The notes beneath the pieces were generated by a model that was not told the DNA's origin, searched no databases, and saw nothing but the letters and a program-made list of their open reading frames with translations. 64,000 bases of DNA from Setoptus koraiensis (lineage: Eukaryota; Animalia; Arthropoda), in NCBI GenBank assembly GCA_048013815.1, contig CM106585.1, forward strand, positions 14,632,001 through 14,696,000, read 5' to 3'. The position numbers and the translations under genes were made by a program. Below are positions 36,168-58,361 of the stretch, in pieces (the first letter of the stretch is position 1; each line of letters opens with the position of its first letter).

Positions 36168-39100
36168 ATGCTGTCGATGAAGTCCACCAACATGTGGCGA
36201 TCACAGTATCTGCCATATTGCTTTATTGTAGCACTATTTTTCATAATATCATCTCATAGAAGCAGCGAAATTTCTCCAGTATTCATCAGTGCCAATCCTA
36301 CTACCACCGCAGATAGTCTAAAACTCAAGCTTAACTGCACGGTAAGTGCTGATACGAGCGGCTTGTGTCAGGCCGATTGTTTGATTGATTTATCCAGTTA
36401 GTTACATCAAATGTAATTAATTAGCACAGCGGTGTGTGCAATGAACAAATGGGTCTAATAATCGTTTTGTCTGTGTCCATCTACCCCGCGTTTGTTATTT
36501 GCATGATGCAAACATAACAACTCACATCATTGAATCAGCCGGGTGAAAAGAGACTGTTCAAATATGATAGCTTTACTAAATTTTGGGGCAACTCGTCGCA
36601 AACTGTCAATCTAAACGCCGACATCAACGTCTACTGCATGGAGGTCAATGGAAACAGGTCAACACTAAAATATTTTGTTGAAATAGTCAATTTAGTGCCA
36701 AATATATTGAATAAATCCAACGATGTAGGTTCAGCAACTAGTGTGTCAAGATTGACACCAACAGCGACAGCGCTAACAGGTAGAATTGGCGAGCAGTCAA
36801 GTGCCAAATATCGACACTCATTCTCATCTGTGGACCGGATGTATCTAGACGGCGACAACGAAGCCGACGGTGAAGACAATGGAAAAGTTGAGCCAATTTT
36901 AGAGGAAATTGGCGAAATCTCTACGCGCATGCGACGAAGTGTGTCCGGTTGGTTCTCGAACACGTGGGTGACTGTGAAAGATTTCTTCGGAAAGATATTC
37001 AATTCAATTGAGGTGTCACCGGGGGAGAGCGTAACGTCAAAGGGGCACTCAGATGCAGATTTCGGCGCAAGCATATTGGGCCAGTGTAAGTCTGGCTCGT
37101 CTAGTCACGGGCAAAAGGGTGATCTACCGTTCGACGAATCCATATTTGACGATGTGGCGCCCGCGTTCAAATTGGGTGCCAACAGAGAATACGGATCGGC
37201 CTCTGAAACTGACAGCGTGCACAGTAGCGAGGACGCCAACAAACAAGATGGGGACAATTCCGAAATGAACAGTGTCAGTTTCTTCGACAGGCCAACAATA
37301 ATACGGCATGGTAGGCACAAACGCGACGCACAAAACAACAAAACAAAACAACTATCGCCGGCGGAATTGTTCAGACTGCCATTTGAGTTCGTACAGACGA
37401 CGGACGGAACAATTGTTGATGTGAGATTCAGCGACAAAGAAACCGATTTGTCCATCAAGAATTTCAAGCGCCACATATGCGACTTGTTTGCAACTCATTT
37501 AGATCGCAGTAAACCGAGCCAAATGGAACTGACGCCCGTCGGCAAGCACGTCACCAAATATTTCTACGACGACGGCGATGGAAAGGTGCTTCAGGCCACA
37601 CTTAATAAGTTGGGCTCTGGCACGGCGAACGACGAGCACGGCGCGACGACAAACGGCGACAACAACAACGATCAGGGCCCCCTATTGACGCGAGTACTGG
37701 CCGTGATTGGTGTGGACAGGAACGGTCAATTGGGGCCCGTTGAGCCTTACAACGATCCGTCGGCCTCTTCGCCGGACAGCAATCAGCAGCACGGCGACGA
37801 GCAGCAATCGACGAAGCAGCCAGCAGTTCGTGTGGCCATCATCAGAGACATAAACTCCACGGACTCGATAAGATTTGGCTCGCAAGCCACGGTGCACGAC
37901 AAGTCACAATTGCGCATAAAAGTGAAACAAATCCAACAGATTAGCGCCAATCAGATGATCTCAACGGCCGGACAATTGTCCATGTCGCTGGTGAAGCTGG
38001 CCAAAAATCGATTCGGCGAGGAGGACTCGCTGATCGCCAACAATCGCTACAGGCGATCTAGCTCGCAGCCCAAATCAGATCGCATCTCGATAGGCATCGG
38101 CTTGGACGACAACGACCTGGATGTGGCCAATTTGTTGCATGTGTCCACCTCGTTTTCCATGAAACTAACCCAGCAGCCCGATCCGGCAGCGAATAGCAGG
38201 CGAAACAGGCGAGACGCGTCAAATGGCAGCTCGAAAGTGCGCTCTGCCGGCAATCAGAGCGGCAATTCTTCGACGACCGAAAGTAATTTGGCCGAAATTA
38301 AAAAATTAGAGCAGCAACTGAAAATGATAAGCACCAGCGTTGTGGCCGAATCCGCTTCGCAAGATGCACAAATGCAGAGGCTCGATATACTGCGAGATCA
38401 GGTGGCTCTCCGCTTGAACGAAGAGGCGGCCCTGGCGACGAAAAAAGGCGACAAGAGCTTCGATTCCGGCTTGTGTCTGACGAAAATCATTCTGGACCAT
38501 GGCCGAACCAGCAAGACGCGCGGCTCGCTTTATTCCACCCTCGAGGAGATAATCGATTTGGAGTATTTGACCAAACAAGAGAACCAGCAGGAGTCAATGT
38601 CGCGCCTGTTGCGCGAAACTATAAAATCCAGCCAACTGCAGAGTTTTTGTCGGAAAAATCTGCAAGATGGTCACCAGGAGCAATCCACAGATAAATCCAA
38701 ATCGCCGTCTGGCGACGCCGACCAGCAGCACGACAGGTCGGCAGAGAGGCATTTGAGCAATTGTAAGAAGATATTGCAATTGCTGCTACGAGCCAACAGT
38801 CGCGAAGCCATAGAGCTGACGCTGAATTTGGTGGACGAATGCAACAAGCAACTGACAACAAATTTGCGCCACGAAGAGTTGGGACACGGGCCCGGCGTGC
38901 GATATTATCGTCGGTGGCGCCAGCAATTCATTGAGCTGCTGAGTGACATAAGTCGGCCAAACGAGTCGTTGTTGGACAAATTGATGATGCGATTGCATTA
39001 TAATTTTGCGCACAAAAACGCAAGCTCTACCCAGAGAACAACGAGAAGAGTATCCAACGGTTTGCCCGCAAGTGTCAACACTAATAACAAGGGTTTCGAG

Positions 39101-41389
39101 TACGCAATGCACAATCCAGCAAAGTCCGGCCCCAAGAAGCACGCTGCCGAAGAGGCCGTGGGCACATTGACCGACGACACTAACAACAACGACAGCGATG
39201 GATCGATAGTGATGACAATCACAAATTTGGCAACAAAGCCCAGTATTTCGCAAGAGAAACGCGTCGATGTTGGCGTAAAACTATTGAATGTGTTGCGTAA
39301 CACAACATGCTCTTTGTACGATGGGCCCGATTTAGACATACTAGAGTCAATGGGCAATCTTCAGACTATTGTGCCAGAGATAGTGCCCAAGATTGTTCAT
39401 TTGGCCAAGAAGTGTCGCAACCAAGATCAGTACACCGTTGCTTGTGTTCACGCGTCCCAAGGTCAGCTACAAAGTGGCCTCATTCAGCGCTGGCTGTTGG
39501 ATCTCATCAAGACGCCAAATGTGACTTGCGCAGTCAAGAGTGAAATTGTGGCCACACTGACAACGGTGTCGTCGATGCAAGAGCTGACCTCATTCGTCAA
39601 CAAGCAAGCCTCAACAAACAAAGAGTCAGCCTCTTGGCCTCATTACGGGCTCAACCAAGTGGACAGTGCTCTGTTAGATCTGGTTGCCGGAAGTAAATCT
39701 TCGCCAGTGGCCAAAAAGTGTCTCAGAAAGCATGTGGAGCAATATTTGAGGAGCAAGCATTCGTCTGTTTCGAAATCGGACGAACTTCTCAGGGGCCTAA
39801 ACTCAATCGATTCGGACAACAATCAGCAGCCAACAAGTGACACAGTCAACCGGAGAGCCAACAGAAATGTGCCATCGACGAATAGTAACAACATCAACAG
39901 AAATGTTTGGTCCAGATCTCAGCTTTTGGGGGCCCCATTCTCAAGTGTTACGGCAAACATCGACGATGGTGGCGGTGTCAGCAATGAGCACAAACGATAC
40001 AAGCGATACGTGACAAAAGACTTTTGGGATGAGGCCGTTTGCAAGCGCTGGTCCTACAATTTGGCGGAAAACAATTCTGCGCCCAATCAGTTGGCCGCCG
40101 CCGAAGAGGATGGCTGGTCGACTAGCAACGACGAAGACAACTCTATTTATACAATGTTGTCCACACCAACCAACAGAACGTCGTCGGCTGCCAGACGAAA
40201 GAACGGCCTGCTGTTGGAACGCGAAGACCCACCAGAATCATCCCCGCAGTCGAGCTCAAACAATGTCAGTAGGCGCCATAAGTGCACGGGCACAAGAACG
40301 TACGGGCCCCGAAACGCAGAGGCCACCATAAAAGCGGGTAAGTGCGCTTTCCGAAATCGCGAATAGAAAATCCAGACATCGTCCTCACCTAGTGTGGCGG
40401 CCTTTATTCGAGATTCTCGAATCGAGAATAAAGTCCGTCTTTGGGCCCGTTCGGGCTCGAATTGGCTTTTATTGATCATAATGGGAGCCACGGGTGCAAA
40501 CCATTTAGGCCGCCACACTATCCTCACTTGCGTCGCTCATTTTTTTCTCGCACGTTTTTGCAAAATTAAAAATTCTCCAAATTAATCAAATTATATTATT
40601 CCATTCTCAAACACATTGATTGTTGGGCCAGAAATCGTCAATGATATCGTGGGCCCCAAAGACGACAACAAATTTCTAGCCCGATTTACTGTGGGCGCCA
40701 ATTTTTTGGGATCTAAGGTCGACATTGGACGCATGTACTTATGGCACCAGCGACAAACCACCCGAGCCTATGTGAATATGTTTGGCAAGACCCTATGGGA
40801 TACTAGTCACAGTTGTCACGACAAGACACCCAGGCACCTGTTATATATGCCCTTGTTTGATTTCAACATTTGGGTTGTCAAAATAAACGTTGGCATTAGG
40901 CTGCACAGTGAGATGGGCTTCTATTCGAGCTGTCGTCAATTGGAACAATCGACTAAACAAAATTCATTGCAAAATGATAATGTTGACAAAAACTCTAGTG
41001 ACGACAATAGTCTGGCTGGATCCCGTGATGAGCTTCATTTGTTTCCTACTATAGGTATTAGAGCAAGCGGGGAGGCATCGGCGAAGTTTGTCGTGGCTAG
41101 AGCAGGCATGAGTATTGGTAGTCATTATAGTTATTTAGGCCAAATAAGAATATCACGCAAGCCAGAGTCTTGTATGTCAATATCTAGCGGTCATGAGCCA
41201 ATGAATGTCACATTTAGTAGCTGGTATCAACTATGGAACAATGATTGCCAATATTGGGGCTCCCGAACAAAAGGGGAACCGCATGCCGTGAAGTGGTCAA
41301 TAAATAAGCGCCGTAGTACCACATGGGTGAGCAATGAGTGCTTGGGTTCGGCATCGAATCGTTCAGTAACGACAAAAATAGAGCCTTAA
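36168..41389 (+). CDS. Large secreted protein with a large-lipid-transfer (vitellogenin/MTP/apolipophorin-like) N-terminal module, about 1576 aa
   Basis: Exons 36168-36341 (hydrophobic leader, donor GTAAGT), 36539-40337 (donor GTAAGT) and 40632-41389 join in frame (4731 nt). LPFEFVQTTDGTIVDVRF...NFKRHICDLF and E.TPVGKHVTKY resemble LLT beta-barrel motifs. The gene model is firmer than the family call. Confidence 0.6.
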
Positions 41390-42260: not shown

Positions 42261-44347
42261 ATGGTTCTCGACATGGACCCATCAAAACAAACTCCGAATC
42301 AATTTCAGCCGACACAAGAACGGCAAGCGAACAACAGTGACAAGAAAAATGAAAATGATCGAAGCAGATCGAAAAAATTTAGTATTTTTGAACTGGGTCA
42401 TTTCCTGGTTGAGTACTTCAATTTCTCTTTTGTTCCTCTTTATTATGACCCCAAATATTATAGACAACAACGAATGTTCTATGTCCTTTACAGGGAAAGC
42501 AAATTGAAATTTATTTTATGCTGCCTACAAGTTCTCTATTTGTTTATTTGGCTCATGCGAAGTGCCTACAATGGATTTAGTTTGAGCAAATATTTAGACC
42601 ATCATTTCATCGACCCTCTATCCACTGCCGAAAATACAGAGTGCTGTGCAATCATGTCACCCACGCAAGCGAATACATCTTTCCGGTCACTTATCAGCTC
42701 CTCATTAACCTACGATCTATGGGTCGACGCCAATAACTATCGTAGACGCTTGAATATAATAACGTTTACATTTACATTGAATCCGTTTGTTCAGAAACTG
42801 TATAGCTTGTTGAGACATCAAAGGCCGAAAATTTGCAAACCGGAAGCAATAAGAGATTCAGACGTCTGTGAGGGATCTGATATACAACGATATCTGAGCA
42901 AGTTAAAGCTTTCAGCTAAAGAACATATTCTCTATTGTTACGGAAATCGGCCCGCGCCAGAATATCTCAAAAAGAAGTTTGCAATATTTGAAAAAATGAC
43001 CAAAAAGGATATTTTAGAGTTCGATCTAATGAAGTTGCACCCTGTGAAAAGATTGTGGTGCAGACCTATCGTTTATATCAATTTGACTAGAGCCGCCACG
43101 ATATGTATGACATTACTTGGTTTCATCGTTTTCTTTTGTTCGAATGCACCATTTTTATTGTTACAACACCCCAATAACAGATTTTCTAGCGGGCCGGTGT
43201 ATGCTGAATGGCTGGAACGTATTCAATTGTTTATATTAGCATTTCTGAACTTGACTCCTTATATTGATTCTTTTGAACTGGTGATTGGCTCCTGTATACT
43301 AACGGATAGATTATTCATTTACAATGCGCAGTTGTTGCATTTTATCGCAGAATTGCGTTTCAAATCCACGAGTCAAACGGAAAACAGCACCACCACAATT
43401 AAAGATCAATCACCATTAGTTGACAAACATCTTACAATCGAGACGAAAGAATCGAAAAAAAATTATCTAACTCTATCTACAGAAAAACCTTATAATGTGG
43501 CAACTAGTAATGATATAATTATGCCCGAACATGGAACATTGGCACTACCTAATTCACCACAAACACAAGTGCAACATCATCAATCATTTGATGCGCAATG
43601 TGAACGCTTAATTAAGATTTTGCTTCAACTATTGTTCGAATTGAAACTGATGAAAATAGATTTCACAAGCAGGACTGATCTGGACATTCTCATATCTCTG
43701 TTGTCGTACACTTGGGTGCTGAGCATGTCACTGGTATCATATCAATGCGACACATGTGAGCAAGACTATATGGCAAACAAATGGCCTATTATGTTCATTA
43801 CTCTCATTGGAAATGGCTATTTGGTAAATGTCATCATACAAGTATTCTTTTTGGCTCGCATATCTCAAAAAGTAGGTTATCTCCTAATTATTCGATCATA
43901 ATATGATAGTTCCATCAAACTCCTCATCTAATCTGAAATCATGCGTCCATTCGTCTATATAATTGTTCCAATTAGTTCAAAATCATCAATCGAAATCTGT
44001 TGCTACTATCAGTGGAGCAAAATAAGTTGAACCGAAAAAGTCGTCGCTGGCTCATTGAAATATCCAGACACCTACAGTCAGGATCGGAAACGTTGTTTGT
44101 TTTATTCCGTTCAGTGTCGGTGAACAATGATAATTTCCTCAAAGTTAGTGAACCATCTCTGTTTTTTGTGCTTATATGACAACTTTTTTCCGTCAGATAT
44201 TCAGGAATATATATCTCTAACCCACTGGCAATAATAATCTCGAATGCCTTGTTTCTTTCTAAAATCTCCCATTTGCAGCTTATTGTGTGGATAACTACGG
44301 CGGTTTACACATTCTTACAGTTCTCGATCGCAGTGGACGTGAACTGA
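42261..44347 (+). CDS. Divergent gustatory-receptor-like 7-TM protein 1 (615 aa)
   Basis: Exons 42261-43871, 43976-44143 and 44279-44347, with two phase-0 GT-AG introns. Ends LIVWITTAVYTFLQF, which aligns with the GR TM7 motif TYxxxxxQF. Seven hydrophobic segments by eye. Confidence 0.75.
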
Positions 44348-45187
44348 GGAGAACTAATTCGTTCAATCAACCGAGATGGATCCTACTAGTCACCATCATC
44401 ACACGTCACACCGTTTATTGATTCGGATTCTAGCCGTTCATCGCGTCGAACAAAGTTCAAGCCCACAACAACAAATCAGTTTTTATCAGTATCGTCAACT
44501 ATGCATTCGAAATGTTTTCAATATTCTATTAGTCCTATTAGTTCAATTGAAATTCGATTCATCATCAGTATTAATGAGATTTTGAGTGAGAGTGTTCGCT
44601 TGCAGAAAAAAAAGCGTAGGCGCTTCCGTTATGACAATGCTGATCACATGTAGATTGATTATACTTATTTTAATAAGGGCATGTGTTGCATTGAGGTATA
44701 AGTGTAATGAAGTGATTGTGGCTTCAAGACGAAAAACATACGCAGTAACAATAAGGTTCGAGAACGGTTCTCGACGAATCTGGCCTACGACGACACCACC
44801 AACAGCATGCAACATTTTTGTTCCACTGGCGTGATCAAGCGGCAATAAATAACTGTAATCTTCGACCAAATATGCCTTCATAACGAGACAGCGATTGCCA
44901 GAAATTAGAAATTAGTTTCGTGTCAGATTACATGAATAAATGTCTGCGTGCTCATGAACCTATAGAAAGGCACCTAGCGAGCAGATTTTTGTCATATCTC
45001 ATCTAACTCTATGCTACAACAACTGCTGACTTTCTTTTCTCATTGATTTTTCAAATCGTTTATCGTATCATCGGGATTTTTAGTGACTATAAAGGCCAGC
45101 GAAAATGAATTCGATTTTGTTCAATCTTGCCAGCTTGTATCACTGCTTGCGATCGCTCACACGAGCGAGGACCTTCACAATAATTGA

Positions 45188-46830
45188 ACCAGTCTTAACC
45201 AAGTAAAGCTCAGACTGCACCTGGATATGCCAAGGAAAGCTTCATCGAACGTTTTAAAACGTCATATCGAATACCCGTGGCTTTCCCAACGAAGTATTAC
45301 CCAGCGAAAAACTTCCAAATTGGGATTGTGTCATAATCTCGAAAACCCTGAATCTCGAATACTGGAACCTCGAATACCGAAATCTCGAAATTCTAAAATC
45401 TCGAAATTCTAAAATCTCGAAATGCCATAATCTCGAATTTGCAATTCTAGTCGCGCGATTGTAAAACGCAAAGTGTAGCAGAATTGTAGCAGACGATTGT
45501 GTTGGAAGATCTTCTTGGATCTCATTCACGTGACTGCTTACCTAGTGACTGTTACTCAACTCTTAATTGAGATTCATTCTTCTTCTTGCACACAAGCGGT
45601 CCACATATCATCTAATTAATTTCAAAGATGTCATCCTCTGATAGTTCAGATGATTCGAATGACTTGAACATCTATTGTCAATTAACTCTTGGCAATAAGA
45701 ATAAGTGGCAAGCTTTCGATGGTGCCTACTCATACATCAATGACAGTATGGTTTGGATTTGGCACCAAGATATGTTTTAACTGACTTCGAAGTTGCTATT
45801 ATTAATGCGGTTCGCGTTCATTTCCCGGCAGCAAGTCACCACGGGTGTCTATTTCACCTTGGCCAGATAATTTGGAGAAATGTTCAAAAACGTGGTTTGC
45901 AAAGATTATACTCGGTTGATCTGCCTTTCGCTACAAAAGTGAGGCAATTGATAGCTTTGGCATTTTTAACTCCTGAAGAAATTCCAGATGCGTTCAATCT
46001 TATAAAAGAAAGTATCGACCCGAGGGCGAATGAACTCGTCGATTGGTTCGATGTTTACTATGTCACTGGTAGGAGAATTAGACGAGGTGTTCGTCCACCT
46101 ATATTTCCGCCGTCCATGTGGTCAATCTCAGAACTAATGGATTCTGGGCTTCCTAGAAGCCAAAACAGCCTCGAAGCGTGGCACAGACGCTTTAATTCTT
46201 TGGCTGGTAATAATCATCTCGGAGTTATTGCTTGTATTGAGCTCCTGAGAGATGAAGCTCATTCAGTTGCCATAACTGTCGAGAGATTGGAGGCCGGTAT
46301 GCTCCCCAGATCTGATGCTGCGATGTCTCAACGAGAAGAACGCATCAAAGCAGTTTATCAGGACAAGAGCAATCGGTCTACAGAAGATTTCTTAAGAAGT
46401 ATAGCTCACAGCATTATGTTCACCGTTGTAGTAGAACGAGAAGACGAAGAAGGTTTCGAAGAAAATGATGAATAAATTTGAGATTTCGGACTTTCGAGAT
46501 TTTAGTATTCGATATTTTGGGATCCGAGATTTCGGGGTAGACCCTTCCAAATTAAACAAGAGCGTAAGCATGAACAACAAGTATGGCTTGCTGAGGCGCT
46601 TCGGACTAAATTTCCTTGACCTGGAAGTTATTCTTGGAGATTCAACCGAAGTATTTGCAAAAAATAGACTACCCTATAGCGCGACGGCTATCGATCACTT
46701 GTTGCAGGAGATAGATGATGACAATCTGTTCGGAAAAGTCGACATGGATAGTTCTTTCAAAGCAAACTCAAAAATCAAGGTATATCTAAGCTGTCACAAG
46801 CACAACGATCTGTCCAATGAAGAGCTCTAA
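45188..46830 (+). pseudogene. Unknown ORF (about 135 codons) split by the MULE insertion
   Basis: Removing 45322-46544 and one TSD copy joins ...ITQRKTSKL to NKSVSMNNKYGLLRRF...DLSNEEL* in the same frame with no stop. No family recognised. Confidence 0.4.
45322..46544 (+). mobile_element. Internally deleted Mutator-like (MULE) DNA transposon, 1223 bp
   Basis: Perfect 9-bp TSD TTCCAAATT (45313-45321 and 46545-46553). Imperfect TIRs start with GGG and are built of AATCTCGAA repeats. The ORF at 45753-46475 carries MULE motifs LTDFE, GCLFHL and SQNSLEAWH. A 5' fragment (45628-45780) resembles the start of a FLYWCH-like domain, fused out of frame; the first catalytic Asp region is missing. Confidence 0.9.
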
Positions 46831-48124
46831 ACAACAGCGATTGTTTGAATACTTACAGATTCTCCAATACAACTGAGCGTCAACTAGAGTGAGGATCTTA
46901 ATATTAAAATCGTGGTCTCAACCAACACTGATGATCAGATTAATTTTGGCTTTTGTGAATATAGACGATTTTCGATTTAAACCATGATTGAAATAGGCAT
47001 TTCTTTGCCAAAAGGTTTTTTTTTCTTGGCTTTACCAGAGTGGATTTCATTCTTAATTTCCGGAATTCGTTCAAACCACAATGAAATCCCTAATGATTGT
47101 ACCTAAAGACCCCCACTCTAACTAATAGTAAGTAATCACCCCCCCCCCCCAAAAAAAAAAGAGCATATATTGATGTACTCACACGGCCTCTCGTTGAAAC
47201 GTGTTATGAGAAAATTTGTGAGAACATTCCATTGGTAGCTCGTTATCATCACGACAGTTGTAAACCTCTCATCATTTACTAGGTGGCCTCTTTTTTTTGT
47301 GGAATCCAACATTGCTTTACGGCACACGTTTACATTAGATTCTGGGAAAGCCATTAGAGATCACAATAAGTTTTATATCATTGACAGTAGAACAATCCGT
47401 GACGAACTACATCTGTTTTTCATAATGTTATGAGAGAGTGGCAGAAAAAAATCTCTGGCTGGTTCTATCTCAGGCTAGTTCATCATTACAAAACTATTCG
47501 ATTGCTTCTCGTTTTTCTTGTTTCAGCTACCATAGCGACAAATTTCATCTTCTCTCAATCAATAACATGCGATATCCTCTGAAAGAAGTGCTCGCACCAT
47601 ATCAGCGTCACGTATAAAGTGGGCTGTGTCACGGCATATCACCATGGCGGAGATATCGTCATAAATCAAACGGAGTGGTCAAAAACAAATACATAGATAG
47701 CTTCTGATCGAAAATCCATAGAACTATGGTCAAAAGGGATCTAAGCTATCACTTGAATTTATTTTTACTTTGAAGAACTATTCTGCATTCTTTACAAACA
47801 CAAACAAGTCATTGCACAGCGCCACGAGGCAGGCGTTGATTCCGAAAGGGTGAAAAATTTGTCACGCAATGGTTTAGTAGAGATCGATTGCAAGACAGCA
47901 TTTCATGATCTTCATCCAGTTATTCGCAATCCCTGTGCTGTTTCAGATCTGTCAAGCTGTAGAGAATCTGGAAAACATATTTTTCGTTTATTCAGTCAAT
48001 ACAATTAATTACTATCATTTTAACATTGCTGTAGATTGTCGTTCAAAGTTATCGAAGAGCTACTCAATTGAAAAGTTAATCACAAGATCTGACTGAGATA
48101 AACTCCATTTTTTATAACATAACA

Positions 48125-50216
48125 ATGAGTTCCGCAATGGAGCTTTGTGTTTCATGCTCAAATCAGTTTCCAACACACAGTCGCCAGTCAAACAGAAGGA
48201 ATACTGATCAAAGCAAAGATAGAAGATTCAGTGTGTTCGAACTTGGTTACAAATTGATCGAAAACTTTAATTTTTCCTTTATTCCCTACTATTACGACAG
48301 CAAATACGGAACTGGACGGAGAGTGATCGCTGTCATATATCGAGAGAGTAAATTGAAACTTTCTTTGTGTTGTGCGCAGTTACTGTTTTTATCCCTTTGG
48401 CTTTGCAACAGTGCCTATAATGGATTCAATTTAGCTAAATACTTCGGTCGATATTTCAACAGTTTGAATGATGATGAAATCACCGAATGCTGCACATGGG
48501 ATTCTATATCGCAATTTAGCAAGTTTTGCTTCTCATCTTTTGTAAGATTAGTCACTACCGACTATTGGATTGCTAGTGTTGACTACAGACGAAGAATTAA
48601 TGTGCTTCTTTTTACATTCACCTTGAACTCGCTTGTTCAGAGATTGTACTGTTTATTGAGATACCAGAGAGTGAACATATCACGACCCAGTATAATTAAG
48701 GAACTTGTACAGGAAAACACAGATACTGTCAGCGAGGAGAACAAGTTCCTACAATTCTTATGCGGATACAAATTAACATTCACCGAACATATAACGTATT
48801 GTATTTTCAGTCGTCCTGTGCCCCAAAGTTTATCCAGCAAAAATCATATCTTGAAAGAAATGACCAAACAGGATATACTGGAGTTTGACTTCATGGCGAT
48901 ACGCTATGACGACGGCTTATTGTGCTCGTCGAAAGCAACGAAGAATTTAGTCAGAGCGATAGCAGTGTGCCTAACAACCTTGATAGCTGCTTCTTTCTTT
49001 TGCACACAATTACCGTTGATACTGAAAGAAATCTATACGGAGAAGAAAAAGGTCGATTGCCATGCATTCATTGTTATTACGCTAAATTATATTAACCTAA
49101 CTTTGATTACACTCGTCAATTCGGCCACATTCGCCGATTCCTTTCTGCTTGTAGAGGTGGCAGTTATATTGTCTAACAGACTGTCCATCTACAATGATCA
49201 ATTAATGCATATTATTTCACAATTGCAAGTGAGAGTTAGCCAACGACCCAATGAGAGCGGCTGCTGGGAACGAATGCGATTCATGAATCATCATGATGTG
49301 TATGAAGAGAACGATCCCCATGCTCGAAGAAGAAGCTCGCATTGTGAGCCTAGTGAATGCCATAATCCGATCAATTCCGAATGTGATACAGGTTCGACAG
49401 CTATGCACTCCTCACAAGTGATGATTGGACAATCATTGGACGCAAAATGCATAAGAATGATCATGATCCTGCATCAAATATTCTTCGAATTCAAACTAGC
49501 GAAGAAAATGTTCACCAATAGAACCGATATAGATATTCTAATATCATTGTGCTCGCTTACTTGGATTATTAGCACGTGGTTCGTTGCATATAATTGTATG
49601 ACGTGCGGTACAGATTTCGTTACACAATGGGTTCTTTTTATGTTCTCTTTTATGGGAAGTGCCCACTTGGTGAACGCGGCAGGTCAAGTGCTCTTTCTAG
49701 CTCGCTTGTCAGAAAAAGTAAGCCTCTGTGTGAAATTTCTTCCATGAAAAACTCTTTTTAAACAGTTAAATTAACCAAATTAAACATTTCTCTTCTCCAA
49801 ATCAATATATGCAATTGATATATGCTCAAATCAATGTGGTGGACGGCGTTCAAATCAGTTTAAACTTGTCAATCGAAATCTCTCGTCGCTGTTAGTCGAA
49901 CAGGAAATGTTTCAGCAGAGAAGTCGCACATGGATATTGGAAACATCGCAATATCTCCTGTCAGTATCAGAAACGTCATTTGAATTGTTTCGGACAGTTA
50001 CAGTCAATAATGAGAACTTTTTCAAGGTCAGTTTTATCGGGCTGTTTTTAATGGTCCTGTTTTGTCAAACAATTCTTTTCTACCCAGATTTATTACAAAG
50101 TTCATTTCCAAAACATTTTTTACTCACTGAATAATATTGCTTCTTTGCAGCTCATTGTGTGGATAACAACGGCGGTTTATACTTTCTTACAGTTCTCCGC
50201 TTCACTTAACATGTAG
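48125..50216 (+). CDS. Divergent gustatory-receptor-like 7-TM protein 2 (608 aa)
   Basis: Exons 48125-49717, 49859-50026 and 50151-50216, with phase-0 introns. Ends LIVWITTAVYTFLQF. Paralogous to protein 1 along its length. Confidence 0.75.
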
Positions 50217-51984
50217 TAAATGGATGAGGAGGAATGAAGAAGAAGTCAGAAATAGAGTTCCTTTAATCAAATGCGAGGCAATATCTCACAATTCGGACTT
50301 TGTTCTCCCTTTTCGCTATACTTTGTATATTGTCATTTGATTGTTTACATGATAATCGGGACCAACAGAATCGGTGGTTATTCTTGTTGTGAATCGGTAG
50401 AAATCATGTGAGAGCCAGGCCTTTTTCGGTAGAAAGGTGAAAATTCGGTGGATACGATTATGAAATACAGTGTTCAGTTGATTCAATTAAACTAGGGCTC
50501 AGAGTTAACAACCGAGCAGCACTCTCAGATATCAAAACTGTCTGATATTATCATTCAAATAGCAAGTGTTTTCTGATCTACAAACACAATCTGTCTCAAA
50601 AAATCACTTGTCCTTTGCGGAAAATCTTTCGAACCTATCATATTCGTAGTGAGAAAAATAAATTTCGGTAAAAACAAGAAATAACCCATACATTCGCTAT
50701 TTCGGTGGAGACAAATTTTTCACAAAGGACTCATTTATGTATGACTTGCTCACATACAAATTTTCAGCGTTTGCACCCGGCTGGGAATGAATCGGTAAAG
50801 AGCCGATTCTTTTGGACCAAATATTAATGAACATTCCAACATACCTGAATAGGTACACCAGAAATGCGGAAATCTACTGTTTTCGATGAGCGATATGTGC
50901 TTCCACGGAGCATGCAACGTTTCAATATGATATTATGGAGGATTCTCTGAAACAGTGGACTTCCGCTTTTCTGGTATATCTTCCTCTGTATGATCTCTAT
51001 ATACTATGATGGAATGATCATAATCATGTAGATTTACTCAAAAAAAAGATACGGTTGAGCCCAAAGAGGGCTCATTTCAATAAAGAGGGCATGCAGATTC
51101 AGAATTCACAAAAGAGATAATGTAATAAATATCAAGACGTACTTTACGTAAGGTGGTAGTGTGAAAACTATTATATGAAAGTAGATAAAATTCAAACAAG
51201 TGAACTAGTAATCACAATCCTCATCACAGTTGAGTCTTCGTATATGTGCCAGTGATTTCAATAGAAAAGTTGGCAAATATGTCAGTTAGATGATAGTGAT
51301 CAGAAGCAGGGAAACCTGTGAAGATTAATTTCAGTGCGATAGATTTCAAATGAATGTTACGTAAATATGCTTGTCGTGAATAGCATCTGAATAGGAGCTT
51401 TTGGTTAACAAGTCGTGAGGTGGGGTAAACTTTCGCTTTCTTCCGTATCAGCCTAACTTCACCCACATCGTGCGTATTTGACAAAAACAAATATTTGTAT
51501 CGTGACATGAGTCAATCTATGTACAGGATATAATGGTCACGAAAATCAATTCTCTGTTCGTTAAGATAAGTCCATCGCTAAATCATCGTTTTCATCCCGT
51601 GAGTAGTGTGCCTGTGATTCTGGATTCGAAGGTTCCAATTGTTCAATGGATTGGGACACGATTCGGGATATCACGAGAATGAGGATTGTTTCTAGGGAAC
51701 CGCTGCCAATATCGTTGTGCTTAGTGAAAGCGCATTGTCCATTTAATGTCTGATGCGTTGATTTTCATCACAGACTTCACCACACCCGGATATAATCTCT
51801 ATCTACATCATGAACGTTCAATCCTGACATTAACTGTATTCGGTATAATTGCTTCAAGTTATTCGGAGCTCCAATCAGTCCAAGCTACTGTCACTCGATC
51901 TATTGCTGATTCTGCCGGGATAGTATTAAGATATAATCGATGGTTTATGAGAAATTACTTTTATTGTAGCTTTGTGATATCAGT

Positions 51985-54189
51985 ATGGCATGCAAAAAAG
52001 TTTCGTACACAGAAAACATTCACATAACCGATCCACAAACCGATAACATGCGACAAGGAACTGCAAATCAAAGCAATGTTATGAGATTTAGTTTGTTTTA
52101 TTGGGGTAACCTAGTAATCGAGCATTGCAATTTTTCTATGATTCCTTACTATTATGACAGCAAATACGGAACAGGCCAGCGAGTAGTTGCCGTTATTTAC
52201 AAACACAGCAAATTGAGATGTTTTCTATACTGCCTACAGGTACTGTATCTATTTATTTGGCTTTGTCGAACTGGCTACAATGGATTTGATCTGAGTAAAC
52301 ATTTTGATGGATATTTACAGAGTTCGAACGGTAGGGATAATACTGAAAGTCCCACATTCAAACCTCTGTCGCTCATTGGGAGAGTATGCCTGGTAATAAT
52401 TAAGAGACTAATTACGTACGATCTTTGGGGTCCGGCAAAGGATTATCGAAGAAGAATGGACATATTAACGTTCACCTTTATGTTACATTCAGTTAGTCAA
52501 AAAATATATTATTTGATGAGGCGCCAGAAGGCGAAAATTCACAGACCCTTAATGATTGGAAATCCAGGTGTTTGTGAGATAACTTTAATCAGGAGGTATC
52601 TATTCTCATTTAAATTGTCAGTGAAAGAATACATTCGCTATTTTTTTCTCAATCAAACCCTCCCAGAATGTCTCATTAGAGAATACCCAATATTGAAAGG
52701 AATGACGGAGAAGGATATAACGGAGTTTAATATGATGGCAATACACAATGAAAATGGACCAATGTGTACATCACAAGCATTCATTAATTTTGTTAGATTT
52801 GTTACTTTGGGAATTCCAATGCTATTCGGTTGTTTTATTTTCTTCCCATTGGTGCCATTTTATTTAGTAGATCACTTAGGTGGGGAAGGCATCACCCAAG
52901 AGATTTATTTCTCCGATTACCTCGAACGTTGCAACATGTTCCCAATGACACTTTGCATCATAACTGCTTTCGTAGATTCTAGCGTACTCGCAGCATTTTC
53001 TATTTTATTGTCGAATCGAACCTTCATCTACAATAGGAAATTAGTCGCACTTATCACCGATTTACGAACCATGAGTAGCCGAGATAATTATCGTGAGACA
53101 CAAGGGTCCATTTGGTACCGCAATGGCAGCGATTTTACTGACACGGACACAAGAAATAACAAAGTTCCGGCTAGAAGTATTTTTTTTCGCACGAAATATA
53201 GTAAAGTAATGACTTTCGAACATGAAAAAAAATCGACATATTCACTCAATTCAACAAAAATGGCACTGCGCAAGTCGTTGGATGCCGAATTCGAACGAAT
53301 CATTCGAGATCTGCACCAGCTTTTGTTTGAATTTAAACTATTAAGAGAATTATTCAGCAAAAGAACCGATCTGGATATCTTCATATCACTGTGCTCATAC
53401 ACATGGGTTCTAGGCACATCTATAATTGCTTATAGATGTGAGGCATGTGTTAACAGATGGCCTTTATTTGTGATAATGCTCGGGGCAAACGCCTACTTGA
53501 TGAGTATTATCAATCAACTATTTTTTATGGCTCGAATGTCTGAAAAGGTGAGTTACCTCTCGCTTAAAGATAACCACATCTTGTAGTGATTGGCATAGTC
53601 ATTAGATTATGACAGCTGAAAAAGTCGCGTCAAAATGAACATCTCGATTGGATCTTAGTTGGGTCAGGATGAAAAGAAAAACCTTTTTTTTCAGATCTCT
53701 TTTCAAAGTCTTTCCGGTCAAATTCATCAAGCTGATTAAGTTGTCCGTTTTGGTGTATCGTTAGCACTAAGCAAAAGAAAATCGGCGCTTCGGATTTCTT
53801 TATCAGCTTATAACAAATGGCTTACAACAAATTCTCTCTTACTGTGCTTGTTCGAATCAGTTCAAACCTATAAATCGAAACCTTTTGTTGCTTTTAACGG
53901 ATCAGCAAACCTTGAGTCCCATCATACGTTGCTGGTTGCTTGAGACATCAAAACATCTCCAGACAGGATCTGAAACGTCGTTTGTTTTATTCCAAGCTGT
54001 GCCTATCAATTATTGTAATTTCCCTAAGGTTAGTATAACCCAGTCGACATTGGAACCTAACATTTATTTACACTGACTATTTTCTTCTCTTGTCAATCTG
54101 TCATTCATATTATTTTTCAGATAGTTGTATGGATAACAACTGCAGTCTATACGTTTTTACAATTTTCCAACGCACTTGGTTTAAAGTAA
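51985..54189 (+). CDS. Divergent gustatory-receptor-like 7-TM protein 3 (about 599 aa)
   Basis: Exons 51985-53547, 53861-54028 and 54121-54189. Ends IVVWITTAVYTFLQF. The start could be a later ATG. Confidence 0.75.
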
Positions 54190-55158
54190 AATCAATTTAA
54201 TATATATCCACAGATGAGGCAGTCTCAAGTTAAAGAATATGCGTAAGTAACTGATAGTATCATGCAGAACCTTTTGTGAGGAGAAACAAGATAAGTTTCG
54301 AGAGACTAAACTGAGAAGTTGCATCGACCGATTGGGGCTCGTTTGATATACGAGAACATTGAAAGTTACTCCCTCTTTTTCAAACAAGCAAGGTTTTCGC
54401 AAGGTGCATTCAATCAAGTTTCTTTTTAGTGTAGTTTCAAGGAGCATTTTATATCAACTACTTACCATAAAAATATTAATCTTTTCCCTAAAAAACTGAA
54501 TGTGTGTTAGATCTTCCCATAGCGATATGATACCAGGGAGTTTGCAAGAAAACATGGACTAGCAGATCGATGTAGGTTGCACTATTTAGAATTAAAAAAA
54601 ATAAAATCTCACCTAGGAATGTAATGCAACATGCCGGCATTAAAAATGCAACAAAATACTAAATAAAAAATGCAGTCCATAGGAACGGGAAGTGACCTAT
54701 AAAAGTATTGATCTTGTTTATTGTTGGAATGAATCAATTTTAAATGGTGTGAATGCGCTGAGTGAGTGCGAGAATAAAATACAATTCATCTACAGAGTCT
54801 ATGAAAGTAGTCTTGTGCTTATCATTCTGATGGCTGTTCATTGAGTATTATTTTGAAGAATTTCTGCCGTTACGCCACCATTTATAACGTATCTATCGAT
54901 GAGTACCAACGATCCTCCATAGAGTATCTGTAATTATATTACAGAACAATTGTCAAAATAAATCTTCTGAGTGAATGGAATCAAGCGGACAACAACAGAT
55001 GGCATTCAATCTACATTATCCTTTAGTATACTAGATGCTTTATTTATTTGTTTCAATATCCAGGATCGGCGCCAGTTTCACTAGTGCTGCTCTTGATCTG
55101 AGAGTCGGGCACAAATCTCGTGCCTATCATGGGATCTGATTTTTTTAGAGAGAAAGAT

Positions 55159-57194
55159 CTATTGAAGATCTAGCGTATAAGAGTACTGTAAGAATGTATA
55201 CACCGCCGTTGTGATCCATACAAAAAGCTGCGATCGAAAAATATTCAAAAAAAACAGTTAGAACAGGATATAGAGTGAAACATAACATTTCATTATATAT
55301 ATCAAAATGAAACTTACTGTAATGAAATGATCATGTTTGATTGAGACTGTGCGAAACAAAACGAACGATGTGATTGATCTTGATTGAAGATGACTTGATG
55401 TCTCTACGAGATCGTATCTGTTCCTTGGATTGAGCATGTTTTGGGCTGAAAGCACCACCAGATTGTCATTAATAAGTTTGCACTAATAACACGATGTTTT
55501 TTGCAATGATTAGTATTGTTGCTCAACGTTGGAAATTAATTTGAAATTAAAATGAACATTCAAAAGATCAGAAAAGAGAATTGAAAAATTTAACGAATGA
55601 ATTCAACTTGAAAAATTACCTTTTGTGCTATCTCAGATAGAAAAAACATTTGGAAAATTATAGTTAGTAAATAGCACAGACCAACAGAGCCAAATACTGG
55701 CAAGGTGACCGTCGGCTTTCCGTAACATGTTTCGCATTTGTAAGCAGTCACCGCTGAGCTTAGAACCCAAGTGCAAGAGCACAATTGAATAAATATATCC
55801 AGATCGAGCCTATCGGTGAAACTTTCCTTCATTAGTTTCCATTCATGCAATAACTGATGCAACACCACCAGCATCCTTTTGCATTCGTCATCATATGTCT
55901 GTAATTCCAAACGAAGCGTATCATCCATTCTGGTCGTGTTCGAATATTCTTTAGCTTGATCAAAAGATGCAAACTTTGGACCTGAATATATTTCTCTTTC
56001 ACAATAGGAAGGGTATTGAGGATAGACGGGCATTCTATTTGTGCCTTGATCTATTCTCTTGAATACAAAACTTTCGCATTGACTATGAGTTTGCTTGATT
56101 TTCTTGATATGCACAATAAGTCGATTCAACTGAATATTATAAATTGTCATTCGATCAGCTACAATGGTGGCGTCAATTAGGACTAAATAGGAGTCTCCGT
56201 AAGTGATTAAATTGAGAAATACGGTGAAGAACAGGTAGATATTTCTCAATAGAACACGAAAATCTCTAAAGTTGATAGTTTTTCTTATCATATCCGAGTC
56301 TTCTTCTGATGATTGTAGCAGAAGGTAGAATAAAAAGTTGTAAACTACTACAGCCATGATAGGTATAAAAAACAGCAAGAATAGTATTCCTATTGTGTTG
56401 TTCACTAGAGTTTTGTATGCGAAAGATGAGATCAACAATTTGTTTTCATGATGCAAATCCATTAAATCAAACTTAAGCATATCTTGTTGGGTTGTTTCTT
56501 TCAGTATTGGATATTCTTTAATCAAATGATCTGGCATGGGTCTCCTGAGAAGAAAATAAAGAATATATTCTTTTATCAAGAATCTATGTGTGAATAAGAA
56601 TTCTTCATACCTGACAAAGCTGTCAGCATAGCCAAAAGATTTCTTTTTCGATGAAGATGCGGATAAATATTGACGATGATAACTAGTCAAACTCTGACTA
56701 TTCTTGCTGGCAAGCTGGCGTCGAAATAAACACAGCAACCGCTGACAGAATGTGTTCAATACATATAAGAACGTTATAATGTTTAATTTTCTTTGATATT
56801 CTTTGAGGCTTGGAAACAATTCGAATGTCATCATGTTCCATATCACTGAGCTATATACTGCATCATCACTCGGTGCAAATTTTCGCACATATCCAGACAG
56901 ATTGAACCCGTTGTAGGAAGTTTGTGTGAGCATAAGAAGCAAACTGGTAATCTGTAGACAGTGAATAAACAACCTGAACTTACAATGCTTATACATCACA
57001 ACGAATATTCGTTGTCTTGATCCATACTTGGTGTCATAGAAATAGGGTGTCCAAGAGATATTGAAGTAATTAATCAGAAAATTTCCTATGATAAACACAT
57101 TGAAGGTTCCGGCCATTTTTCTCTTCTCTTTACAACTAGCATTGGTGGCGCGAGTTTGGACATCTAGTCGGTTATTTTCGTCTAAGCTGGCCAT
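55159..57194 (-). CDS. Divergent gustatory-receptor-like 7-TM protein 4 (602 aa)
   Basis: Minus-strand exons 57194-55620, 55482-55318 and 55227-55159. Ends LFVWITTAVYTFLQY. Same intron positions and phases as the other three. Confidence 0.75.
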
Positions 57195-58361
57195 GGTTGT
57201 TGGTGTCTCAGATCTCGAATCTCAATCTAAAATCAATTTCGTTCTATTGGTACTATTGACTAGAGCTAGTTATTGACCAATCTATTGCAACCTAGTCATG
57301 CTTGCTCTTTGCGATCGTCTCCCTTAACAGTATCTATGTGTCCAGAATCAAAGATTCGAGACACACATCGTGCGGGATTAAAAAATTGCAATTTGTTTAC
57401 CCAACACACACAGCTAATTCATATGTCCTCAATTCTGCTCGAATTCTGTTATTTTTTCCAAGATCCTGGAAGAGTTTTATGCCATTATGAATTTAATGAT
57501 GTTGATGCAACATTAGTTAGAATAGATGTCAAAACATGTCTAATGCTTAGTTATGGCGTGTCACATGGATAGACATGGATTGTCTATTATCGCGTCTATT
57601 CATTCCTGTGAGATACGCAAAAATTCTAATCATCAAAGCTGCTGTCAGACGAACGTCAGATTAGTTGGTAGCACGAAAGTTCCATCGTTTGTTTATCGGT
57701 GGTCGATGCGTGTGGAAAACGCGTGAAGTGATCGCCGGATTAAGCCCAATGATTGTTATTTCTACAGCATCGTCATTCGCCATGACAACTGGTACCCCAA
57801 CAAAAGAATATAGTGGATATAGAAAGCTATCTGCAAATTTCTAAGCTACATGTACAAAACCGATCACTCTCTGCTCAGATGATGGAATGACAATACTAAC
57901 GAGCGCCGGCAAGAGATCTAAATCACTGAACGGATCACTTCTGTGTCATGGCCTCTTAGCGATCATCTTCAAATCTCATGTTGAAGACCGAGTCGTGGAA
58001 AAAATGCTTCCAGATAAAAAAATATCTCATGTCGATCGCTGACTGCGCTTCACTAAGATTAATCTAGTGACACCCCTCCACCGAGCTTTTAAAGGTCTTG
58101 CACACAAACTTTGATGAAGTTTGGAAGTCAAATTTTAGCAAAAAGACAAAAAACGATTAAAACTTAACACCTGAGATTGAAGTCACTAAATTTTCAAATG
58201 TGAACTTTCATATTGAAACTTTCCAAAGTATTCTTTTATGCCTGGGTTTTTTTTATACACAACATCCAGCATTGATGATTTTCTCCTGCAATTCCGATGA
58301 TTACAAATCAAATTATATCGTGAGATTATCTTGATCCAGTATACTTATTATTTCATGAGTT

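Follow-up and report, generated by a model that had tools for sequence, protein, structure and literature searches.

An array of four genes in an eriophyoid-type mite probably encodes oversized, divergent relatives of gustatory receptors

Four paralogous long open reading frames (ORFs), each with two small downstream exons, lie at positions 42261–57194 of the window, by which we mean the whole 64,000-nucleotide stretch of Setoptus koraiensis DNA analysed here (GenBank assembly GCA_048013815.1, contig CM106585.1, positions 14,632,001 to 14,696,000 of the forward strand). The locus raises the question of what kind of protein these genes encode, and whether the small exons belong to them. A preliminary description of the DNA read the four genes as unusually long, divergent gustatory receptors (GRs). 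This reading is supported by an intron located six codons before the equivalent of the GR motif in transmembrane segment 7 (TM7), by the T, Q, and F residues of the motif, which do not vary between copies, and by the predicted fold of helices S0–S6. The four genes are probably a lineage-specific, very divergent subfamily of the GR and gustatory receptor-like (GRL) branch of the seven-transmembrane ion channel (7TMIC) superfamily. The kind of protein is a known one, a GR/7TMIC that is unrecognisable by sequence and recognisable by structure, and has precedents in the Grls of Drosophila and the divergent GR clades of spider mites.

The long ORFs, identified by an ORF scan, occupy positions 42261–43901 (+), 48125–49747 (+), 51985–53586 (+), and 55590–57194 (−) before splicing. 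Each stops a few codons past a conserved segment, ...(L/M)(A/S)(R/E)xx(Q/E)K, which is positioned at an in-frame GT. A script that searched for phase-0 GT and AG sites produced a single consistent model per gene. In all four predicted genes, two canonical GT..AG phase-0 introns separate the long exon from an exon of 165–168 nucleotides (nt) and a terminal exon of 66–69 nt, as the preliminary description had proposed. The predicted spliced products of genes g1, g2, g3, and g4 have 615, 608, 599, and 602 amino acids (aa), respectively, and contain no internal stops. The exons are listed below, together with one-to-one orthologues among the database proteins of the family (P0001–P0019), which come from another species.

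42261..43871, +, g1 exon 1: 537 codons; N-terminal motif and helices S0–S6; phase-0 donor AAA/GTAGGT at 43872; 1:1 orthologue P0003, 56% identical
43976..44143, +, g1 exon 2: 168 nt; TM6–TM7 loop and predicted S7a; AG acceptor and GT donor in phase 0; kept in paralogues and in the other species
44279..44347, +, g1 exon 3: 69 nt including stop; putative pore helix S7b, LIVWITTAVYTFLQF...
48125..49717, +, g2 exon 1: 531 codons; folded, model mdb9964e24e6e
49859..50026, +, g2 exon 2: 168 nt
50151..50216, +, g2 exon 3: 66 nt including stop
51985..53547, +, g3 exon 1: 521 codons; 1:1 orthologue P0005, 57% identical
53861..54028, +, g3 exon 2: 168 nt
54121..54189, +, g3 exon 3: 69 nt including stop
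55620..57194, −, g4 exon 1: 525 codons; folded, model m8cc38483c597; 1:1 orthologue P0008, 50% identical
55318..55482, −, g4 exon 2: 165 nt
55159..55227, −, g4 exon 3: 69 nt including stop; LFVWITTAVYTFLQY...

Intron 1 of g3 (53548–53860) has a length of 313 nt, two to three times that of intron 1 in the other copies, and holds a second in-frame AG at 53807, the use of which would add 18 codons. The acceptor at 53861 was chosen because the length of the exon is conserved. The second introns of g1 and g4 are in frame, yet each contains a stop. The comparison of the four products with the window by tblastn identified no further copies or fragments. Gene conversion among the paralogues was considered and rejected, as their longest exact common stretch is 17 nt.

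The last exon opens with L-I-V-W-I-T, six codons, which are followed by T-A-V-Y-T-F-L-Q-F, nine residues ending in QF. The sequence WITTAVYTFLQ(F/Y), noted in the preliminary description, is present in the last exon of all four genes. In each of the four genes, as well as in the other species, the last intron is of the GT..AG type and in phase 0. A conserved intron six codons before the motif TYhhhhhQF is shared by the GR genes of Daphnia, most insect Grs, and the gur genes of nematodes (PMC2680840). The last intron of the window genes is thus exactly at the ancestral GR position, since six codons separate it from TAVYTFLQF. The first threonine of the motif (position −8), the glutamine, and the final phenylalanine or tyrosine are invariant in every copy seen, including members of the family that are only about 25% identical in exon 1. 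In Bombyx mori Gr9 (BmGr9), the corresponding segment is 436-TYLVILIQF-444, in which Thr436 forms a hydroxyl ring in the pore, Gln443 swings into the open pore, and Phe444 is a hydrophobic plug (PMC11100771). The threonine preceding the motif in the window genes corresponds to Thr435 of BmGr9.

The spacing of the motif agrees with that of a solved GR. From the last structurally aligned residue (531 of g2, equivalent to 375 of BmGr9), it is 71 residues to the gate phenylalanine, versus 69 to Phe444 in BmGr9, and exons 2 and 3 therefore supply just the length needed for S7a and S7b. The first intron, also in phase 0, is positioned right after S6, at the start of the TM6–TM7 loop, a region to which introns of the GR genes of Tetranychus urticae also map (PMC5203786). 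Together, the intron position and the pore motif constitute evidence that is independent of the fold.

The TM7 motif is encoded by a short terminal exon. The small exons could in principle be chance ORFs, or the genes could be decaying pseudogenes, with real products that are single-exon ORFs of about 530 aa. The database proteins P0001–P0019 are indeed single-ORF calls, made automatically in the other assembly, that end in intron 1, and the search for RNA-Seq runs described below listed none. The case for these exons therefore rests on evolution. Between the four paralogues, exon 1 is the least conserved, with identities of 31–41%, compared with 45–59% for exon 2 and 68–76% for exon 3. The three-exon layout is repeated in the other species, where a 165–168-nt exon and a 66–69-nt exon again lie behind phase-0 introns, so that frame, length, and splice sites are kept in both species. 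In the other species, the TM7 exon encodes W(I/V/L)TT(A/G)VYT..Q(F/Y), a pattern that holds also for members whose exon 1 is only about 25% identical.

Selection on the small exons was estimated from the nonsynonymous (dN) and synonymous (dS) divergence of exons 2 and 3 between orthologues. The pair g3/P0005 has a dN of 0.154 and a dS of 1.77, and the pair g4/P0008 a dN of 0.059 and a dS of 1.07. The resulting dN/dS of about 0.06–0.09, with dS above 1, indicates that the short exons are under strong purifying selection as protein-coding sequence. The reading frames are intact in all four genes. The window was additionally compared with other public sequencing runs of the same species over positions 51900–57300 (5401 letters, 33% of them non-coding). 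Five single-nucleotide polymorphisms and one indel were found, at positions 53565, 54823, 55038, 55068, 55075, and 55246, all in introns or intergenic DNA, whereas the 3.6 kb of coding sequence contained no difference. The four genes are intact and selectively maintained, and it is extremely improbable that the small exons are chance ORFs or remnants of pseudogenes. All database proteins of the family lack the putative pore helix, as the automatic gene models break off in intron 1. In a search for a family member or locus with an intron missing or readable in frame, two longer relatives, P0007 and P0016, were rejected, because they are longer solely by reading into intron 1.

The spliced products contain seven hydrophobic segments each, as translation and hydropathy confirmed. 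Segments S1–S6 are encoded by exon 1, according to the AlphaFold2 models, and the seventh by exon 3. Segments predicted to be inside the cell total 352–363 aa and those outside 59–73 aa. The family thus has predicted intracellular loops longer than the predicted extracellular loops, which is the third criterion proposed for 7TMICs (PMC9998090). The density of lysine and arginine is 0.12–0.16 inside and 0.04–0.10 outside, a positive-inside bias that is modest as an indication of an intracellular N-terminus and an extracellular C-terminus. The 150–200 residues by which the proteins are extended are located in the N-terminus, extracellular loop 1 (EL1), intracellular loop 1 (IL1), and the disordered intracellular loop 2 (IL2). 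The shared N-terminal motif of the preliminary description was recovered, in that F..F..G, N-F-S, and P-Y-Y-Y-D-x-K-Y-G are invariant or nearly invariant columns of the alignment.

The exon-1 products of g2 and of g4, the most divergent copy, were modelled using AlphaFold2 and a family alignment of 23 sequences. The g2 and g4 models have predicted local distance difference test (pLDDT) values of 72.0 and 70.9, respectively, and both have a predicted template modelling score of 0.69. Both contain long helices in the order S0, S1, S2, S3, S4, disordered loop, S5, and S6. In a Foldseek search of the PDB, insect odorant receptors (ORs), Orco, and Gr43a ranked on top, with probabilities of 0.9–0.99. 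The best match among the Swiss-Prot entries of the AlphaFold database was Drosophila Gr66a (DmGr66a; E-value 9.5e-4, probability 1.00) in a list dominated by OR and GR entries, and a search of the AlphaFold database clusters was headed by OR and GR clusters. Structure prediction and a Foldseek comparison had been proposed in the preliminary description as a check of the GR reading. The exon-1 part of the proteins, S0–S6, which the models cover, came out as GR/OR-like in this check.

An unrelated, lineage-specific family of multi-pass membrane proteins could in principle resemble ORs and GRs through convergent evolution or because AlphaFold2 is biased. Against this, structural comparison placed exactly the eight OR/Orco/GR representatives above a gap of 5–7 Z-score units for each of the two paralogues. 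The structural alignments run in register from the N-terminal helix S0 to the end of S6 of the targets, and end where TM7 of the target begins, as expected for queries lacking TM7. We therefore regard an unrelated family as very unlikely.

Standard sequence searches miss the family, as the preliminary description had anticipated: no known family was reached through Pfam, through the PDB sequences, or by scanning 1.84 billion proteins with a profile. The search with the 7tm_7 profile suggested in that description did not bear out, as no exon product gave a match at E ≤ 10. Likewise, neither the exon products nor the relatives matched the hidden Markov models (HMMs) of 7tm_7 (PF08395), Trehalose_recp, or 7tm_6, and hmmscan of ten relatives against Pfam produced nothing meaningful. 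Look-alikes in the ESM Atlas had scores of at most 0.85, belonged to no named family, and were uninformative. Among the GRs of T. urticae (TuGRs), only 8.9% match the 7tm_7 HMM (Ngoc et al. 2016, PMC5203786). The absence of a 7tm_7 match therefore bars the family from being filed under the Pfam model, and not from the superfamily.

Several observations count against the assignment of the genes to GRs. The products of exons 1, 2, and 3 have no match in Pfam at E ≤ 10, the PDB sequences yielded a single profile match, attributable to chance (E = 1), and the search of 1.84 billion proteins returned nothing outside the family itself. The E-values of the Foldseek matches in the PDB are weak, 0.08–2, with TM-scores of 0.3–0.46. 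Both models cover exon 1 (S0–S6) and end before TM7, and they are not independent, since they were built from the same shallow alignment, 23 sequences deep. The proteins exceed the typical length of GRs by about 200 aa, and the canonical tyrosine of the TY pair is replaced by alanine. The Drosophila receptors Gr36 and Gr59c/d also lack this tyrosine and carry the variant T(H/N)(S/A)hhhhQ(Y/F/W) (PMC9998090). At the transcript level, three public runs that hold the region contain no spliced joints; their contigs are genomic DNA, spanning introns and intergenic DNA. A run search restricted to RNA-Seq listed none.

About 19 proteins of the family, all from a single further public assembly, are the only relatives of the four genes. 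Seven of them were retrieved when 5.8 billion proteins were searched with a word index. Comparison of a profile with 1.84 billion representatives in a full HMMER search returned 16 true relatives as well as a repeat artefact, P0020, which was rejected as a family member because its match is due to tandem repeats. The contigs looked up for the relatives all come from one sequencing run. They are L001/L007, which are one contig, L002, and L003–L006. The other species has at least about 19 members in several deep clades, and six or more of the genes are arrayed on one contig of 18.6 kb. A literature search found no papers describing this receptor-like family.

In a maximum-likelihood tree, g1, g3, and g4 each pair with a one-to-one orthologue with a support of 100/100. 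Gene g2 has no one-to-one orthologue, and several deeper clades are present in the other species. Synteny is kept for g1, g3, and g4, and the pair of genes located upstream of g1 is matched by orthologues that also lie upstream of P0003. The ORFs 36530–40366 (+) and 40616–41389 (+) match positions 3199–6912 and 7055–7822 of contig L006 with identities of 72% and 90%, respectively. The two ORFs are adjacent and may be exons of one gene; the smaller one, 40616–41389, has no Pfam match at E ≤ 0.01. The receptor-like orthologues are 50–57% identical, compared with the 72% and 90% of the flanking genes. The tree, synteny, and identities indicate that the family is old within its lineage, is arrayed, gains and loses copies, and evolves faster than its neighbours.

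Between g1 and g2, the ORF 45753–46475 (+) is similar to the MULE transposase domain in its C-terminal region (PF10551, E-value 3.2e-7), and is adjoined by the ORF 46465–46830. The MULE-like ORF appears to be a piece of a transposon that inserted into the array, as described for the GR clusters of spider mites. A gene with a PTB/PID domain (PF00640, E-value 3.9e-26) at 58362–59081 (−), beside the start of g4, delimits the array. At 17972–20911 (+), one uninterrupted ORF of 979 codons encodes a SETDB1/eggless-like histone methyltransferase (ESM Atlas score 0.97, nearest clusters from arthropods). The genome is intron-poor and belongs to an arthropod-type animal. The two introns retained in the receptor-like genes stand out because introns are otherwise scarce.

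By analogy with the solved GR and OR channels, four subunits of the window proteins may assemble into a ligand-gated cation channel. Exon 1 would encode the S0 helix and S1–S6, the segments that make up the ligand-pocket domain of GRs and contribute to their cytoplasmic anchor. Exon 2 would contribute the TM6–TM7 loop and S7a, and exon 3, with its 21–22 codons, the pore helix S7b. The invariant threonine, glutamine, and phenylalanine would form the hydroxyl ring and the gate, while the variable S1–S6 bundle may bind small molecules, with tastants or odours as the most probable ligands. Assembly into tetramers, activity as a channel, and a role in chemosensation are all putative, and extrapolated from characterised relatives.

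The proteins could also be true relatives of GRs with the 7TMIC fold that are not chemoreceptors, and instead sense light, temperature, or internal metabolites, or have a non-sensory role in the membrane. The fold and intron evidence is silent on ligand and tissue, and large cytoplasmic insertions in IL1 and IL2 are atypical of GRs. The superfamily also has members of unknown or non-chemosensory role, such as the cryptic branches GrlHz and PHTF (PMC9998090). However, tandem arrays, lineage-specific gain and loss, seen in g2 without a one-to-one orthologue and in the extra copies of the other species, and an evolution faster than that of the neighbouring genes form the classic pattern of chemoreceptors. 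Human PHTF1/2 were not among the top 30 Swiss-Prot fold matches. A role outside chemoreception is thus unlikely, and the assignment of the genes to a divergent chemoreceptor subfamily of the GR/GRL branch is preferred.

According to the first genome paper on an eriophyoid mite, Aculops lycopersici has only two GRs, a count that was obtained with BLAST and InterPro and interpreted as the loss of nearly all chemoreceptors in a specialist herbivore of miniature size (PMC7738191). This agrees with the preliminary description's statement that the eriophyoid GR repertoire is thought to be extremely small. The number of chemoreceptors in such mites is probably higher than published. The chances are evenly balanced that eriophyoid-type mites carry a sizeable hidden GR-derived repertoire, too divergent to be recognised by sequence and with about 19 or more genes in the second species, in which the oversized subfamily is the main chemosensory family and a candidate for host-plant recognition. 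If the family is of the GR type, as proposed here, the published near-complete loss reflects the limits of sequence searches, and mite gene counts need revising. The family would then offer concrete candidates for the receptors by which these mites, some of them crop pests, find their hosts. The retention of the ancestral GR intron in TM7 despite intron loss means that a single intron position can be used as a homology marker where similarity is gone. The locus also exposes an annotation trap, in which gene callers ending at the first intron lose the putative pore helix.

The window family shares with the solved GRs (B. mori Gr9 and Drosophila Gr43a and Gr64a) seven helices and long cytoplasmic extensions of S4–S6, both predicted, and may share the short extracellular C-terminal tail. 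The pore residues T...QF, the distance from S6 to the gate (71 versus 69 residues), and the phase-0 intron that precedes the motif by six codons are also alike. In contrast to the solved GRs, the window family has no detectable sequence similarity to them and no match to Pfam 7tm_7. The window proteins have about 600 aa, whereas the solved GRs have about 400–450, and the extra length is in the N-terminus, EL1, IL1, and IL2. The motif of the window family has TA instead of TY, with a tyrosine two residues further on.

The family resembles the T. urticae clades TuGR-A and TuGR-B, which are mite-specific, arranged in tandem arrays, fast evolving, and mostly invisible to 7tm_7, and which have a degenerate TM7 motif and transposon fragments within their clusters (PMC5203786). 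As in the TuGRs, phase-0 introns are located in the TM6–TM7 loop and in TM7, and a subset of TuGR-B has just two introns (PMC5203786). TuGR-A and TuGR-B have mostly lost the motif (PMC5203786), whereas the window family keeps a strongly conserved T, Q, and F in TM7; this comparison is with the published description of the clades. The Drosophila Grls, including Grl36a and Grl43a, are connected with Grs through a homologous intron, in phase 0 and preceding the TM7 exon, and through the variant motif T(H/N)(S/A)hhhhQ(Y/F/W) (Benton and Himmel 2023, PMC9998090), and the same features link the window family to Grs. The Grls belong to the fly lineage and have the ordinary size of GRs, whereas the window family, which belongs to mites, is both arrayed and large in two or more species.

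Insect ORs and Orco gave higher Z-scores than GRs in the structural comparison, which probably reflects helix lengths and conformations, and not closer kinship. ORs are an insect-specific offshoot of GRs, and their presence in a chelicerate would be unexpected. Both the intron and the motif are indicative of the GR lineage rather than of ORs.

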